Of a DNA stretch of 64,000 nucleotides, positions 1 to 6,476 are shown one piece after another; the stretch's first letter is position 1; every line of letters starts with the position of its first letter. Made by a program: the position numbers and the translations under genes. Location: the NCBI GenBank assembly GCA_937625935.1, contig OW569358.1:1-64000 (forward strand), written 5' to 3'. Below the pieces are notes generated by a model. That model worked only from the letters and a program-made list of their open reading frames with translations. It searched no databases and was not told the origin of the DNA. The stretch comes from Tetramitus jugosus. Taxonomy: Eukaryota > Protista > Heterolobosea.

Positions 1-750
1 CCAAAACCCAAACCCAAACCCAAACCCAAACCCAAACCCAAACCCAAACCCAAACCCAAACCCAAACCCAAACCCAAACCCAAACCCAAACCCAAACCCA
101 AACCCAAACCCAAACCCAAACCCAAACCCAAACCCAAACCCAAACCCAAACCCAAACCCAAACCCAAACCCAAACCCAAACCCAAACCCAAACCCAAACC
201 CAAACCCAAACCCAAACCCAAACCCAAACCCAAACCCAAACCCAAACCCAAACCCAAACCCAAACCCAAACCCAAACCCAAACCCAAACCCAAACCCAAA
301 CCCAAACCCAAACCCAAACCCAAACCCAAACCCAAACCCAAACCCAAACCCAAACCCAAACCCAAACCCAAACCCAAACCCAAACCCAAACCCAAACCCA
401 AACCCAAACCCAAACCCAAACCCAAACCCAAACCCAAACCCAAACCCAAACCCAAACCCAAACCCAAACCCAAACCCAAACCCAAACCCAAACCCAAACC
501 CAAACCCAAACCCAAACCCAAACCCAAACCCAAACCCAAACCCAAACCCAAACCCAAACCCAAACCCAAACCCAAACCCAAACCCAAACCCAAACCCAAA
601 CCCAAACCCAAACCCAAACCCAAACCCAAACCCAAACCCAAACCCAAACCCAAACCCAAACCCAAACCCAAACCCAAACCCAAACCCAAACCCAAACCCA
701 AACCCAAACCCAAACCCAAACCCAAACCCAAACCCAAACCCAAACCCAAA
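1..750. repeat. Terminal telomeric array (CCCAAA)n / (TTTGGG)n, ~125 units
   Basis: Uninterrupted CCCAAA hexamer from the contig start to 750, with the C-rich strand at the 5' end as expected for a left chromosome end. Confidence 0.98.
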
Positions 751-871
751 TCGGAAAAATTGTTCGTTGTGCTATTTTGTCGCGATTTGTCCCCAGAAAA
801 ATCTTTTATTGTCAAAATCAATGAATAAACTCGAGGTTTAGTTTTTCTTGGCAGAACCTAGTTATGCAGTT

Positions 872-3208
872 CTAGAGCGAGTCGAGATCGAGCGATAGTA
901 AATACTCCCTTTCTCTTTTTTTTTCAATGGCTTCTACAGATTTTTTCTGTTCATGTCCTTTGTTGTCCTGCTCGATTTCGATTGGAATTCTGCTATCTAT
1001 TTCTTCTTGAGTTTCTTCCATTGTTAGGAATTTATCTGTTAGGATATCATCCATTGTACTCTGGCAAGCCGATAGCTCAGAAAGAGATATTCCTTGTTCG
1101 TCGTTTTGTCTGTCCAAGAATTCATCAATCATAGAGTTCATAGTGGCAGTGTCCACTTCATCGAATTCTTGTGTGACAAGTTGAGACAATGAAAAGGAAT
1201 CATCTGTCTCCTTTGGTGTTTCCGGTAAGATTAGCTTGTTTGGGAAACGAAATTTGGCATCATTTTCTTCAAAATTTCTCTTCCAAGTCAAATCCAATTT
1301 TCTTTTAGTTCCTCTGGGCAGAAATCGCTTTGCTGCACTTCCCTCATTGGAATTGCTCTTGACAGCATAGTCTTCGTAAAAGACTCTGTCAATATACTCA
1401 TCACGTTTGGCACCAACTGCTAACTTAACAAACATACTCTTCCCAATGTTCAGTAATATCGAAGATCTCAGGTCTGTACTTCCGTTGCTATATTGCTGAT
1501 TTTGATTCAATGCATCTTTGCATTCGATGGAACTTTCAGCCCATTGCTTAATGTATTTCTGATGATACACAGACCATATGGTTTGGTGATTCTTTCCCAC
1601 AGCGTTTTTATCTTCTTCATGACATGCTTTACCAAGGTTGGGTCTCATCTCTAAAATTCTCTTCTTGATACTTCGAAACGAAACAAACTTCTTAACTGAT
1701 GAGGGAGATTTCTTTGGGTGCACACTTGATCTTCGTACTTCCCTCAATGTTGTTCGAACTGGTGTGTTGGGTGTTGAAGTTTGCTCTGAGTCCATGTTCC
1801 AGAATACTTTTACAAGATTTTGGGCTTCTGTGTGTTGTTGTAAGTCTTGTAGGCTTGCCACATTTTGGGAGCAGAATATCGACATTCTTTCATATGCATC
1901 AATAGATTCATCGTTGTTCCATCCAACATGTCTCTTGATAGCTTGTCTGATACTATCTTTGATTATTCCGTATCTCAAAATGCTAGTGAGTAATGCTTGG
2001 CAAATATGCCCACTTCTTAAAGACCTCATTGTGTATCGGCATTTAAGAATTTCAGCTGAACTCGTTTTCATGAGATTGGACATATCTTTTGAACTCATGG
2101 GTTGTTCAGATGTTGCTTGAGTGAACAAATATTCTTCTTGAGCTCCAGTTTTTAACTCAAAATTGTTCTTGCTTATCATGTCTTGTAGTGTTCCAGCCTG
2201 AAATACTGTTCTAATATGAAAAAGATACCACAATAGGGAAAAGACTGGACATTCATTGAAATCGTTACTTCCATAAACAGTGTTTCGAAGTTCTTGTCCA
2301 CCAATCCCCTTGTTCTTGAATCCAACATTCTGAACTACCAAGTAAGTGTGATCGTCACATTTCACGGAAGCAAATTTCAGATCCTTGAGTTTCATGTAGG
2401 ACAACGTGTCTCCTCTCCAGCCAATGTGTCTTCCATACATGATAATGGCCCTCAATCTGATTTGAGGTTCTCTATTATCCTTTTTTGCTAAGGCTCTTTG
2501 CCATCTTGATAAATCATGATTTAACAAAGGAAACACCTTGAATTTGGAGTTTCCATACTTCCTGATCAAGGCTCGAAAGAGTTTCTTAATGAACTCTCCA
2601 TACTCACTCTTCAGATCTATTCCTCTTTCCTCCTTTAAGAGACAACATAATTGATTCCAAAAGCAATTCACAACAGTACTATGGCTGTACTTGTAGATGA
2701 CTCTCATATGCAGTAAATATAGTCCAGAAACATATTTGCCTGGATGGAAACGATCAACAGTTTTCAACTCTTCATGAATGTCCTTTTGTTCATCCAACCA
2801 TCCAATCCAACTTCTCCAAGCGTAATCTTGGACTAACTTGGTTCCAGGAGCTTGTGAGAGTTGCATAATATTAATCAATTCCTCCATCTGATTGGCAAGT
2901 GATTGGGTCTCCTCTAAATTAACTGTTACCTCTCGACAGAAGTCATTAGTGTCGCGAATCTTGTCCATTCTTCGAATGAGTTCAACATGCACCTCATCTG
3001 TTATTTTTTTCTGATTTACATTTCTTGCACGAGTTCTTCCTAGCAATGCTGATAGCTCCTCTTCAATATCTTCCATTGTTGAGCCATCCAAACATTGATT
3101 TTCTATTGGGTCATCGATCGATAGGAAACCACTCGCAACTAAAGGATGAACGGGAGATGTTTCTATTTTATTCAGATGACGGGTGAACTCGACCTCAATT
3201 GTTGTCAT
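872..3208 (-). CDS. Tyrosine recombinase/integrase (Cre/DIRS/Crypton-like catalytic domain), 778 aa with acidic C-terminal tail
   Basis: Catalytic motifs in order: R265 (IGWRGD..MKLKDL), K298, CPV (320-322), RSLR (395-398, the HxxR box), HVGW430 and Y439. A core-binding-like region covers ~aa115-220 (APGT..YAWRSW, YSHSTV). AATAAA lies on the minus strand at 810-805. Confidence 0.88.
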   Translation of the reverse strand: MTTIEVEFTRHLNKIETSPVHPLVASGFLSIDDPIENQCLDGSTMEDIEEELSALLGRTRARNVNQKKITDEVHVELIRRMDKIRDTNDFCREVTVNLEETQSLANQMEELINIMQLSQAPGTKLVQDYAWRSWIGWLDEQKDIHEELKTVDRFHPGKYVSGLYLLHMRVIYKYSHSTVVNCFWNQLCCLLKEERGIDLKSEYGEFIKKLFRALIRKYGNSKFKVFPLLNHDLSRWQRALAKKDNREPQIRLRAIIMYGRHIGWRGDTLSYMKLKDLKFASVKCDDHTYLVVQNVGFKNKGIGGQELRNTVYGSNDFNECPVFSLLWYLFHIRTVFQAGTLQDMISKNNFELKTGAQEEYLFTQATSEQPMSSKDMSNLMKTSSAEILKCRYTMRSLRSGHICQALLTSILRYGIIKDSIRQAIKRHVGWNNDESIDAYERMSIFCSQNVASLQDLQQHTEAQNLVKVFWNMDSEQTSTPNTPVRTTLREVRRSSVHPKKSPSSVKKFVSFRSIKKRILEMRPNLGKACHEEDKNAVGKNHQTIWSVYHQKYIKQWAESSIECKDALNQNQQYSNGSTDLRSSILLNIGKSMFVKLAVGAKRDEYIDRVFYEDYAVKSNSNEGSAAKRFLPRGTKRKLDLTWKRNFEENDAKFRFPNKLILPETPKETDDSFSLSQLVTQEFDEVDTATMNSMIDEFLDRQNDEQGISLSELSACQSTMDDILTDKFLTMEETQEEIDSRIPIEIEQDNKGHEQKKSVEAIEKKREREYLLSLDLDSL

Positions 3209-3232
3209 TGTTATTGTTGTGTTTCTAACAAA

Positions 3233-4189
3233 CTATTTGTTACGTTGTTTCTTCGATGCACTGGAAGCACCAGAAGCCGATGCAGTTCTTTTTTTGGTGT
3301 GGAGGGAATTGTTGGAATCCTCTTTGAGATTACTCAAAATGCTACGAACCATTGAAGGAACTCCATTCTTGGTCAACAACTCTTTTTTGACATAAGTGTC
3401 AACGGTGGCTGGTGTAAATTGAGAAATTACCCAGAAGGGAAAATTTTCGAACTCCAAAAGGTTTTGGACCATCACAGAGTTACCCCTTAATATGGAAGAT
3501 AATTCCATCACGGTACTTTTCTTATTATAGGCCACCGTCAGGTTGACTAAAAATTCCCCCACCCGAATCTCTCTTGAAAAAGAATTGAGTTCCGAGCCGT
3601 TGGGATCTCTTCTCTTCAACGTCTTGAAAAGCTCTTGTCCCTCCAATTTGAGCTCCTTTTTCCTGATAGCATACCGCATGCAGGCCACTGACTTCATTGA
3701 CTTACTCAGTGTCTCAAAGTCCTCGTCGTTAAGCTTGATCAACGACCTAGCCTCGTCCGTACCGACCAATTTCACGGTTGTGTTGAGAAGGCAGAGTGCC
3801 TTCTTGATCCAATCCATGCTTTTTCTTGTTTCCTCATCAGGACCCAGGAGGCAACCCAAACTTTCTACTGTCTCTCGAAGTTCTTTGATGGTAACTGCAG
3901 CCTCTTTGAGTTTTTTTGTCAGTTGGTCGTTGTCTTCTTCCTCCGTTATGAGATCTCTCTTGAGTTTCTCCAGCTCCAGTTCCTTTGTTTGATCGTGCTC
4001 TACGAATATTCCTTCCCCATCACGGGTGATGACAACAAACACTTTGAGTTGTTCGTTGGTTGTTGGTAGCAAGGACTCGAGCGAATTATCCAGTGTACAA
4101 GAGATTCTTGTTGATAGTGCTGTGGTAGTTGTAGTGGTTGGTATTGTAGTATGTGTTGTTGGTGTCGTGATTGGTGTTGGTGAGTTCAT
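3233..4189 (-). CDS. Hypothetical coiled-coil protein (element ORF2), 318 aa from first ATG
   Basis: Long open frame. First ATG is at 4189 (the track start at 4270 is GTG). Thr-rich N-terminus, heptad-like E/K-rich segment and a basic NLS-like C-terminus (KKRT..SKKQRNK). It ends 24 bp before the YR ATG. Confidence 0.7.
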   Translation of the reverse strand: MNSPTPITTPTTHTTIPTTTTTTALSTRISCTLDNSLESLLPTTNEQLKVFVVITRDGEGIFVEHDQTKELELEKLKRDLITEEEDNDQLTKKLKEAAVTIKELRETVESLGCLLGPDEETRKSMDWIKKALCLLNTTVKLVGTDEARSLIKLNDEDFETLSKSMKSVACMRYAIRKKELKLEGQELFKTLKRRDPNGSELNSFSREIRVGEFLVNLTVAYNKKSTVMELSSILRGNSVMVQNLLEFENFPFWVISQFTPATVDTYVKKELLTKNGVPSMVRSILSNLKEDSNNSLHTKKRTASASGASSASKKQRNK

Positions 4190-4252
4190 TGGTGATTTGT
4201 GATTTTGGTTTTTGTGATGTGTGATGTGTGATGTACCAGGTAATAAATATTG

Positions 4253-4322
4253 TTTAGGCCACACGCTCACGTTTCAGTTCCAACGATGCTGAATAGGAGG
4301 AAACGCGAACGTGTGGCCTAAA
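4253..4322 (-). other. 23-bp inverted repeat / hairpin with 24-nt loop upstream of ORF2
   Basis: Arms tttaggccacacgctcacgtttc (4253-4275) and gaaacgcgaacgtgtggcctaaa (4300-4322) are 21/23 complementary. Confidence 0.85.
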
Positions 4323-4761
4323 AAAATATCTTGTCTTGCGAAAGGCACTCAAAATGTGAAGTAGCAATCTGATTTTTACAGAGTCGCAACAACAACAGTT
4401 GCAACAGATGAAGCACACCCGATTGTTTTATCTGTCCTATGAATCTCAATCAGAGCCATTGCATCTCCGTTCAATTCGAACTCATGATCATAAGAATGGT
4501 TGTATCAATAAAAAATCACAAATTACAGACCATTTGTTCGATTCATTGATTTTTGATTGATTCGTTTGTTTTTTATTGTTTTTATGCGATGTTTTTGTCA
4601 AACCCGGCTGGAACCCTGATTGCTTGTTCTGAAACAACATGTGTGTTTCACATTGTGGGAGATTCTTAAATTCTTCAAATGGAATGAAGAAAAAGATAGT
4701 AATCATCTGATACCGGAGTGCAGAAGAAGTGTGGTATAATAAGGGCTGTTGCTTACGTAAC

Positions 4762-4796
4762 AACCCAAACCCAAACCCAAACCCAAACCCCAACCC
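4762..4796. repeat. Interstitial telomeric tract, (CCCAAA)4 plus a degenerate unit
   Basis: aacccaaacccaaacccaaacccaaaccccaaccc, in the same orientation as the terminal telomere. Confidence 0.92.
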
Positions 4797-5184
4797 TGTA
4801 AAATGATACTATACTCTTTCATATCTCCTTTCAGTTCTTTACAATTTCATACCCTACCTTCCTTGATGCCTCTTCTCTCTTTGTCCTATTGTATTTTCGT
4901 TTGCACTCCTTCCTTCAAGTTGAACCTTCATCAAAGGAGTTTAAACTCCTTCATCCCTTTATTACAAAATATTTCCTGTCGTGTCCTTTGTTTTCTCCTT
5001 TGTCCCAGTTTCTGTTCATCAGTTGACAATGTCATTCACCGTCGAGAATGTATTCATCAGGCTATTGTATTAACCGATAAAGTATTACAAACAAATTATG
5101 AAGGATTTCAATCTTGTAGTTCAACCGACTCTATCACACAGCATCTTCCTTCAGAAGTTCGAACCTCCATGACCTCAGTTTCAA

Positions 5185-5505
5185 GTTCCTCTGTAGAAAT
5201 CTTCATAGGCGGAACCATCTGGTTCCTCTTAGGCATGTGTGTATTTAGGCGGAACCAGCTGGTTCCACTGAAAAAGTCATATTATAGGCGGAACCAGATA
5301 GTTCCTCTGACAAAGTCAAGTTTTAGGCGGAACCAGCTGGTTCCTCTGTAAAGTCGAAAATTTAGGCGGAACCAGATAGTTCCTCTGAAAAAAAGCTCTT
5401 TTAGGCGGAACCAGCTGGTTCCGCTTGTGAGTCCAACTTTTAGGCGGAACCAGATAGTTCCTCTGTAAAAAAGCTTTTCTAGGCCGAAATGGCTGGTTCC
5501 GCCTA
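5185..5505. repeat. Array of 8 palindromic ~24-bp repeats (TAGGCGGAACCAGMTRGTTCCDCT) with 15-16-bp variable spacers, 39-bp period
   Basis: Units start at 5206, 5246, 5285, 5324, 5363, 5402, 5441 and 5480, with a half unit at 5185. The core GGAACCAGCTGGTTCC is a perfect palindrome in units 2, 4 and 6. Confidence 0.95.
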
Positions 5506-5542
5506 TTTTTTCGACACGCACCAGTCAATAGCTCATAGAGAT

Positions 5543-5568
5543 TTGGGTTTTCTGAGTTCAAAACCCAA
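5543..5568. other. Inverted repeat with 9-bp telomere-like arms and 8-bp spacer (TTGGGTTTT-CTGAGTTC-AAAACCCAA)
   Basis: Arms are exact reverse complements; the asymmetric 8-bp spacer gives a lox/FRT-like layout. Confidence 0.6.
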
Positions 5569-5715
5569 CTCCATATCATAGTTTGGGGGATAGTTCAGAA
5601 TCTACAGTGACATTTTCAATACAAAGCTTAAGTTGAACATTTCAGACCATAAAGAATACAAAAACATCTTTTACAACGTACGGTTGACTGTATTCGGCCA
5701 TTCTTGGTTTGTCGA

Positions 5716-5740
5716 TATGTGACAACCCAAACCCAAACCC
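5716..5740. repeat. Second copy of the 25-bp telomere-junction motif (direct repeat of 4754-4778)
   Basis: tatgtgacaacccaaacccaaaccc versus tacgtaacaacccaaacccaaaccc, 23/25 identical. Confidence 0.75.
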
Positions 5741-6476
5741 ATCCATACTTCCCAGTTCCAATATGACAGTTGAAAAACTCAAGTATGTTCCTCCAGTGAG
5801 TTGTCTCCCCGAATCTAGGAAGATTATCTTCAAGACAATCTTGAAGACAAGCTCCTCATGGCTCATGTCGATACCACAGTGTATGCGTTAATTTGGCTCG
5901 AAGAAGCTTCGTAGAACAACGACTAGAATACTTTCAAATTATTTCAAGGATTTTCATAGAAATATTGATTAATGAATTGATTGGATAATAAAATGACCAA
6001 TAATGAGTACTATGCCCAGTCTCTGGATTATGCTTAGATTATTATAGAAACTGTTTGAAAGAGGTGGAAACTGTTGAGTGAAAAATAATGTTAGCCAAGG
6101 ATTAACAGTGCATTAATAAGAAGAAGCGGTCGAGAATTATATAATGAAAGAGTTTATGGTGCTACCATACTCTGTATCGACGAGAAAGTGCTATTATTTG
6201 TTGTCTAGAACTTAGTAGAGAATTTTAACAAGTTGAATTCAACTCGTTTTGAATGAAGAGAATTAGAAGAGTAATATAGTGTTCTTGTAAAGAAGGAAAT
6301 CAATTGAAGTAATCAAAGTATTAAAGACTCAAGAGAGAACTGGATGAGCAAAAAGGGAGTTATGTTAATTGAGAGAGACAAGAGGAGTATGATTCTGAGA
6401 AGAATTATCTCTCCATTGTATTAGACTCGTCCAAGAAAACTCAACATTCGAGATTTCTGATGAGCTGGGTTTCAAC

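Follow-up and report, generated by a model that had tools for sequence, protein, structure and literature searches.

The left end of contig C15 of the heterolobosean amoeba Tetramitus jugosus (GCA_937625935.1, contig OW569358.1) is capped by a telomere, and directly inside this telomere lies a 4-kb unit with two genes, one of which encodes a protein with the predicted fold of a tyrosine recombinase. The window considered here, by which is meant the whole stretch of 64,000 nucleotides (nt) that begins at this end, was in an initial annotation proposed to carry an element without reverse transcriptase (RT) that integrates into telomeric repeats, and the terminal repeat, the pair of open reading frames (ORFs), the internal telomeric tract, the junctions, the repeat array, the dyad and the second junction motif on which the proposal was built are all where it had placed them. 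The two-gene unit, called type-1 below, is a member of a real and well supported family of terminal units, best filed as Crypton-like recombinase elements with a terminal life style similar to that of Y' or HeT-A. On its chromosome side it is followed by a second unit, type-2, which is non-coding. In window coordinates the features are the following.

1-750, minus strand: terminal telomere found by repeat finding, about 125 repeats, which read TTTGGG on the G strand and CCCAAA on the plus strand
751-762, minus strand: motif that ends the two-gene unit at its 3' side and adjoins the telomere, CAATTTTTCCGA on the G strand
872-3208, minus strand: ORF-A, 778 amino acids, predicted Cre-like tyrosine recombinase with a helical C-terminal extension
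3233-4189, minus strand: ORF-B, the partner gene, 318 amino acids from the first ATG
4250-4325, no strand: inverted repeat found by repeat search, with 26-nt arms, a 24-nt gap and 88% complementarity
4741-4763, minus strand: motif at the 5' terminus of the two-gene unit; together with the last telomeric GGGTT it makes up the imperfect dyad GGGTTGTT-N8-AACAGCCC
4762-4796, minus strand: internal telomere seed of telomere polarity, with an irregular start GGGTTGGGG and then (TTTGGG)4
4797-5724, minus strand: type-2 non-coding terminal unit, apparently cut short
5206-5505, no strand: array of about 7-8 units of 39 bp, each with a palindrome
5543-5568, no strand: dyad with telomere-like arms TTGGGTTTT-N8-AAAACCCAA and lox/FRT-like geometry
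5703-5724, minus strand: motif at the 5' terminus of the type-2 unit, GTCACATATCGACAAACCAAG on the G strand
5725-5741, minus strand: innermost telomere seed GGG(TTTGGG)2TT, at the border with unique chromosome DNA

Read along the G strand, the order is thus chromosome, GGG(TTTGGG)2TT, type-2 unit (5724 to 4797), GGGTTGGGG(TTTGGG)4TT, type-1 unit (4761 to 751) and telomere. The terminal repeat is given by Tandem Repeats Finder as 124.5 copies of AAACCC, 100% perfect, at 4-750. On the G strand the junctions of the type-1 unit, marked here by a slash, read ...GGGTT/GTTACG... at the 5' side and ...TTTTTCCGA/TTTGGG... at the 3' side, and the second junction motif (5716-5741) is 92% identical to 4754-4779. 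The assembly comprises 26.35 Mb in 56 contigs, and a pattern of four telomere repeats has about 6,200 matches per strand in the whole genome, which fits telomeres at most of the contig ends.

That ORF-A is an intact tyrosine recombinase in an RT-free unit, as had been proposed, cannot be seen with Pfam, where neither ORF-A nor ORF-B has a match above threshold and where matches to RT, transposase, GCR1_C and zinc-finger families are absent, but it is confirmed by the predicted fold. Profile searches of the PDB sequences with ORF-A likewise give no relevant match. An AlphaFold (AF2) model, made from 17 paralogues and homologues, has a predicted local distance difference test score (pLDDT) of 75-90 over core residues ~125-450, and it recovers the recombinase fold for which such a model had been suggested as a check, with an N-terminal core-binding helical domain and a C-terminal catalytic domain. 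All 50 of the 50 best Foldseek matches of the model in the PDB are tyrosine recombinases. When the model is compared with Cre (1crx), residues 111-455 match Cre residues 31-338 with a Z-score of 19.0 over 284 amino acids in both domains, and in the comparison with the catalytic domain of XerH the Z-score is 16.1, with a root-mean-square deviation of 3.0 Å over 187 amino acids (VIA in both cases). The recombinase core occupies about residues 120-460.

The catalytic residues were assigned by motif, spacing and secondary structure rather than by residue-level superposition, and with this assignment R265, K298/K300, W430 and Y439 are invariant among the ORF-A paralogues, while R395 and R398 are nearly so. 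Among 28 distant homologues, with 19-34% identity to the window protein, R265 and K298/K300 are again invariant, and R398 and Y439 nearly invariant. K298/K300 are placed in the turn of a beta-hairpin between strands 287-297 and 306-312, R398 at the start of a helix, and Y439 in helix 434-452, nine residues after W430. A profile search of 1.84 billion representatives gives 96 clusters related to ORF-A, and weak Pfam signals from Phage_integrase, Phage_int_SAM_4 and NDC10_II appear in the distant homologues: NDC10_II has sub-threshold matches in two of the 28 (best E 5e-6) and Phage_integrase matches in six. NDC10_II is a domain of the yeast protein Ndc10, which is derived from a Crypton (PMC3212892). 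The ratio of nonsynonymous to synonymous divergence (dN/dS) of ORF-A is 0.06-0.12. Judged by the model, ORF-A is predicted to be a very divergent Cre-like tyrosine recombinase that looks catalytically competent.

ORF-B, with its stop codon at 3233-3235, is separated from the ATG of ORF-A by exactly 24 nt (3209-3232), and when it is read from a GTG start instead of the first ATG its length increases from 318 to 345 amino acids. From its N-terminus, which is variable, the protein continues into a long coiled coil and a conserved helical C-terminal domain, for which the pLDDT of the AF2 model is about 90, and it ends in a basic tail. Fold searches in ESM Atlas, in the PDB with Foldseek and in the wide searches of VIA match only the coiled coil, and no helicase match is found in Pfam or with Foldseek in the PDB. 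The dN/dS of ORF-B is 0.08-0.17. The partner ORF pointed out in the initial annotation is conserved, in that ORF-B is found upstream of ORF-A also in C42, C41 and C13, and in L065 and L066, which are contigs of another assembly. In the C41 copy (L003/L062, C41:1032-4355, minus strand) the two are even fused in frame to one ORF of 1107 amino acids.

In its own genome, ORF-A has 38 matches and ORF-B has 32, at 27-76% identity, and nearly all matches to either ORF are no more than ~10 kb from a contig end. For ORF-A this is verified for at least 30 of the 38, where terminal position is judged by low coordinates or by a terminal repeat tract at the locus. The unit is multicopy and terminal, as had been anticipated, and not a single-copy gene with internal syntenic orthologues. 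Only for one short piece of ORF-A is an internal position clear, and neither seeds nor end motifs accompany the few ORF fragments inside contigs (in C50, in C12 and in C15 at 383 kb). The subfamily closest to ORF-A is always directed toward the telomere. Between the C15 unit and those of C42 and C41 synonymous sites are saturated, with a synonymous divergence (dS) above 2. Between C42 and C41 themselves (L002 and L003) dS is 0.31 for ORF-A and about 2.0 for ORF-B, i.e., the units are mosaic. As a separate observation, the two ends of C13 (L063, C13:1-10000; L064, C13:565007-575006) form a terminal inverted duplication of more than 10 kb, in which ORFs of 631 and ~600 amino acids are shared together with an identical truncated ORF-A, in inverted order.

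Both termini of the type-1 unit are conserved. The 5' pattern GGGTTRTYACGTAAGCMAYRGCCCTT, which covers the 26-nt motif at this end, has nine copies in the genome and none for the reversed control, and all nine are near ends and directed toward the telomere. At the 3' end the motif is T-rich and comprises ~11 nt, CAATTTTTCCGA in the window, and nearly the same 11 nt precede the telomere in C42, C41 and L066, while the ~350 nt before them do not align between the copies. The 5' leaders and 3' trailers of the C15 unit cannot be aligned with those of C42 and C41 either. That the end motifs are kept next to leaders and trailers that cannot be aligned, and in units whose synonymous sites are saturated, points to constraint on cis-acting sites. 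The last telomeric GGGTT is, in type-1 and type-2 alike, one arm of a dyad whose other arm is an inverted A(A/G)CCC, 13-14 nt further in, and in the type-1 dyad one R/Y position of the arms changes jointly in both, G with C and A with T. The units in L065 and L066 open with similar dyads.

One element within the leader is also kept: GAAACGTGAACGTGTGGCC is found upstream of ORF-B in C15, in C42 (three direct copies) and in C41 (two inverted copies), whereas the remaining leader cannot be aligned. In the window it is the core of the inverted repeat 4250-4325, which lies 60-135 nt upstream of the ORF-B ATG and is probably a promoter or regulatory element. A repeat search finds no long terminal repeats in the type-1 unit, and a 13-nt inverted match between 814-826 and 4541-4553 was judged to be chance. 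In a metagenomic relative (L074:2745-2800, L075:393-448, L076:268-323) the string ATTTTTCCGA, identical to the 3' end motif of the window, stands just before the internal seed and may mark where an inner unit ends at its 3' side.

The array and the second junction motif, which had been taken as neighbours of one and the same element, are real, but they turn out to be part of the separate, much more abundant, non-coding type-2 unit. Copies in C43 and C5 match 4904-5741 with 90-91% identity over 841 nt, and between 5146 and 5800 the contig depth reaches about 20-35 times the value for the two-gene unit. Searched together with the GGGTT before it, the type-2 5' junction is found 21 times in exact form in the genome and never with the reversed control; all 21 are terminal and point outward, on the minus strand where coordinates are low and on the plus strand where they are high. 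In a genome of 26 Mb, junction motifs with nine and 21 copies against zero for reversed controls are far beyond chance. The first bases of type-2, TTGTCACATA..., resemble those of type-1, TTGTTACGTA.... The 39-bp array, with the palindrome GGAACCAGCTGGTTCC in its repeats, contains 26-bp palindromes, of which the best copy is TAGGCGGAACCAGCTGGTTCCGCCTA; it is kept in the C43 and C5 copies and is a candidate array of binding sites. In the same copies the dyad 5543-5568 has conserved arms and a variable spacer. Compared with shuffled sequences, GGGTT...AACCC dyads are in excess in several, but not all, of the terminal stretches scanned. In Rfam, the window segment 700-6600 has no type-2 family and only chance-level microRNA matches in the palindromic array.

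Some further observations concern the borders of type-2. The ~107 bp between the seed and the common part of the unit (4797-4903) match none of the other ends compared, and the short-read contigs of organism A diverge at 4887-4904. Other copies agree with the type-2 5' end for no more than its first ~21 nt and diverge from there, at 5704. A groundwater metagenome contains such a ~21-nt piece flanked by inverted telomere repeats, GGGTTTGGGTT ... AACCCAAACCC.

The units occur in stacks. Short telomeric tracts, each with its own length and irregular start, precede units in C41, C42, C13, C43, C5 and L065, and most of these seeds, though not all, open with a start of the type GGGTTGGG, variable between copies. 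Stacks whose inner units are truncated occur in C15, C42, C43, C5 and L065, and also as joints in contigs: the organism A contigs join the 5' seed of type-2 to position 4328 of the type-1 leader, and also to 4889 of another type-2 copy. Type-1 copies and remnants inside the stacks are cut at the 3' side and type-2 copies end at different points, while the outermost type-1 units (C15, C42, C41) are intact. To exemplify, ORF-A gives way to a seed and then another unit in L065, and in C5 it is cut at HVGW, after which come a seed and a type-2 unit. Copies of ORF-A that run straight into telomere are found in C13 (at ~residue 495), C9 (at ~722) and C5 (at the HVGW codons). Between two internal seeds at the right end of C42 (L061:5237-5263) there is a 27-bp non-telomeric fragment, probably all that erosion has left of a unit. 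Short irregular seeds together with inner units truncated at their 3' side are the record expected when units are added serially to chromosome ends that have been eroded and then reseeded by telomerase. The truncated inner units also fit copying by break-induced replication.

Two other routes to such stacks were considered and set aside. Rolling-circle copying predicts intact inner and truncated outer units, the reverse of the pattern seen, and retrotransposition primed by the G overhang does not agree with a unit that has neither RT nor poly(A) and whose sense strand is the G strand.

The expectation that related protist genomes carry copies next to TTTGGG is borne out. At a scaffold end of Naegleria gruberi (GCF_000004985.1, assigned to this species in PMC11702301; L071), (TTTGGG)4 is followed by 400 nt, a gene for a recombinase with a chromodomain and, 6 kb on, a TTTGGG telomere. 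The inner part of this N. gruberi telomere (L071:18780-18940) consists of variant repeats, with TTTTTAGG alternating with TTTGGG, before the repeats become pure TTTGGG. GCA_041937235.1 has three homologues at distances of 0.1-3.4 kb from a contig end, and two of the three adjoin TTTGGG tracts. The order in the metagenome contigs L074-76 is seed, 2 kb, gene, 1.1 kb and telomere, and in L069/70 the telomere end comes 2 kb after the gene. A search of metagenome contigs for related loci gave one short locus. L066, a 4.3-kb contig of another assembly, consists of a single complete unit with TTTGGG repeats on either side. Metagenomes from groundwater, soil and freshwater contain near-identical DNA, and the short-read contigs of organism A match 760-4755 without differences.

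Inward of position 5741 the window has no match to the other chromosome ends compared. The stretch 6750-64000 is gene-dense, with 25 ORFs of at least 250 amino acids on both strands, uninterrupted in the standard code, and CAA-repeat tracts are frequent in it.

From these data we favour, with a probability of about 0.5, that Crypton-like, RT-free units propagate in dependence of their recombinase and are specialised in telomere seeds of the TTTGGG type, in a heterolobosean amoeba and its relatives of the Naegleria type. It is favoured because the enzyme is intact and under selection, because the conserved termini consist partly of telomere sequence, because type-2 has a similar 5' end, and because the association with telomeres is family-wide. 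The scheme would be as follows. A type-1 unit (751-4763) is transcribed toward the chromosome end and carries ORF-B, ORF-A and the conserved cis ends. The recombinase, probably aided by ORF-B, would recognise telomere-like half-sites, and a free or donor copy of the unit would then be joined to the short telomere seed of an end that had been eroded and healed. The type-2 unit would be mobilised in trans by way of its similar 5' end and its own telomere-armed dyad. With repeated rounds, stacks would arise in which inner units are 3'-truncated and spaced by seeds of 2-4 repeats. In this scheme we infer three things: catalysis of the additions by the recombinase, the identity of its substrate sites and any involvement of circles.

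Several observations weigh against recombinase-dependent propagation. No circle, excision product, empty site or new insertion is observed in contigs that break at the repeats (700-759 and 4756-4801). The box that should read HxxR is in nearly all members R395-S-L-R398, so that RxxR replaces HxxR with arginine in place of the first histidine. The first position of this box varies in some active recombinases, and R395 therefore does not exclude activity. The 3' end of type-1 has no arm that resembles the 5' dyad, and for this reason a classical attL/attR pair was not adopted. Some of the deeper subfamilies (C19, C28, C25, C18) face away from the telomere. All proximal tracts that have been seen consist of 2-4 repeats, whereas random integration into a telomere of 750 bp predicts long tracts. 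It holds, as originally described, that telomere repeats of one polarity bound the unit; the short irregular seeds and the 3'-truncated inner units speak against a simple insertion into a telomere. Furthermore, there are large recombinational duplications of ends (C13 with two identical ends, C25 equal to C28, and C29 with copies at either end), which could spread the units without any recombinase, and the discordant divergence of ORF-A and ORF-B between C42 and C41 implies homologous exchange between units, by recombination or gene conversion.

These last points lead to an explanation which we consider quite possible, although not probable, namely that the units are a subtelomeric family of the Y' kind, spread only by homologous recombination or break-induced replication, with the recombinase pair as a passenger or as a domesticated host gene family. 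In yeast, Y' elements are terminal and multicopy, have their ORF directed toward the chromosome end, have short internal telomere tracts between stacked or tandem units and spread in connection with short telomeres and recombination. The amoeba units are similarly terminal, multicopy and set off from inner DNA by internal telomere tracts, but Y' encodes a helicase where the amoeba unit encodes a recombinase, and conserved end motifs of the dyad type are not known as a feature of Y'. A critically short or newly healed telomere would invade the short seed in front of a unit on another end and copy from there to that end, and a domesticated recombinase would have a function other than the spread itself, for example to resolve or exchange chromosome ends. 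Spread by this route accounts for short seeds, unique seed starts and 3'-truncated inner units at least as well as serial addition by a recombinase does, and the duplications of whole ends and the mosaic of C42 and C41 support it; the absence of an attR-like site at the 3' end and the fact that the most abundant unit is the non-coding type-2 also count in its favour. What it leaves unexplained is that termini are conserved beside saturated non-coding DNA, that two otherwise unrelated units start with a similar 5' dyad, and that an intact recombinase stands next to TTTGGG across species at a protein identity of ~25-30%. The recombinase and break-induced replication may also act together.

It is unlikely, but of interest for what it would mean, that the units serve in a DNA-based repair of ends, in which the Cre-like enzyme would recombine a cap, consisting of a unit plus telomere, onto an end that has been eroded to a few repeats. 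Rather improbable is that the recombinase is a domesticated enzyme for end processing, similar to a telomere resolvase or acting in end exchange, with the units as fixed cis cassettes and not mobile DNA. Telomere-armed dyads and the array of 26-bp palindromes do adjoin the genes, purifying selection is strong, and the terminal position is kept in the whole family, all of which speaks for such an enzyme; yet the best structural matches of ORF-A are Cre, Xer and lambda Int, with telomere resolvase absent from the top 50, the many truncated and decaying copies and the deep paralogous subfamilies are what one expects if the DNA is mobile or expendable, and at the ends there are long TTTGGG tracts of the ordinary kind instead of hairpin signatures. 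An assembly artefact, or a single event of telomere healing beside an ordinary gene, is very improbable, for although no contig in the short-read contig sets spans the repeat junctions, the architecture recurs at many ends of the same genome and in independent assemblies and metagenomes (L066, L071, L073, L074-76), and the organism A contigs agree with the window between the junctions.

Among known systems, the units come closest to Cryptons, which are DNA transposons with tyrosine recombinase only and occur in fungi, oomycetes, diatoms and animals (Kojima & Jurka 2011, PMC3212892). Crypton termini have short direct repeats of 4-6 bp, presumed to be the substrate of crossover (PMC3212892); the type-1 unit also has direct repeats at both ends, and in its case these are the flanking 6-bp TTTGGG repeats of one polarity. 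Like Cryptons, the units are eukaryotic and RT-free, have neither terminal inverted nor long terminal repeats, and have a tyrosine recombinase as their key enzyme. The type-1 unit holds only ORF-A and ORF-B, with neither RT nor transposase by Pfam, and a second ORF is known from some Crypton families. The weak NDC10_II matches in distant members are a further likeness, and any membership in one of the Crypton clades (F, S, A, I) would be putative. Unlike the amoeba units, Cryptons have not been reported as telomere specialists, and the amoeba family differs further in that it has no Pfam match above threshold, no GCR1_C (a domain of CryptonF only) and RxxR for HxxR, and in that it has a coiled-coil partner and forms terminal stacks with healed seeds. 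In the literature searched there is no account of the family, no link between Naegleria and tyrosine-recombinase elements at telomeres, and no telomere-specific Crypton.

With the telomeric retroelements (HeT-A/TART, SART/TRAS, MoTeR and the endonuclease-deficient Penelope-like Athena/Coprina) the units share the niche and the arrays of truncated copies made by serial terminal addition. These retroelements need reverse transcriptase, whereas the amoeba unit has neither RT nor poly(A) and has the G strand as its sense strand. The end-primed HeT-A/TART and Athena/Coprina, moreover, have their 3' end on the centromere side, while in the amoeba unit the 5' end is proximal and truncation occurs on the distal 3' side.

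The premise of the initial annotation that no eukaryotic tyrosine recombinases are telomere specialists was too strong, since endogenous nimaviruses of crustaceans have telomere-repeat-specific tyrosine recombinases (PMC10871703), and no others of this specificity are known. In the nimaviruses also a tyrosine recombinase is tied to integration at telomere motifs, with telomere repeats on both flanks (PMC10871703). The amoeba unit differs in being a 4-kb cellular element of a protist, with neither viral genes nor a Pfam zinc-finger match.

If recombinase-dependent propagation is true, the units would be the first known cellular recombinase DNA element specialised in telomeres. Stacking onto worn ends has previously been known mainly for reverse-transcribing elements. 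The family makes it testable how a tyrosine recombinase achieves specificity for a repeat of 6 bp, and its practical value lies in a compact recombinase with candidate short sites, and in markers for the dynamics of chromosome ends in free-living amoebae. Three ways of building or rescuing chromosome ends are known, by telomerase, by retrotransposons and by homologous recombination, and to these the recombinase units would add a fourth, site-specific route. Should they indeed cap eroded ends, site-specific recombination would in heterolobosean amoebae play the role that HeT-A/TART plays in Drosophila, or that amplification of Y' plays in telomerase-deficient yeast.

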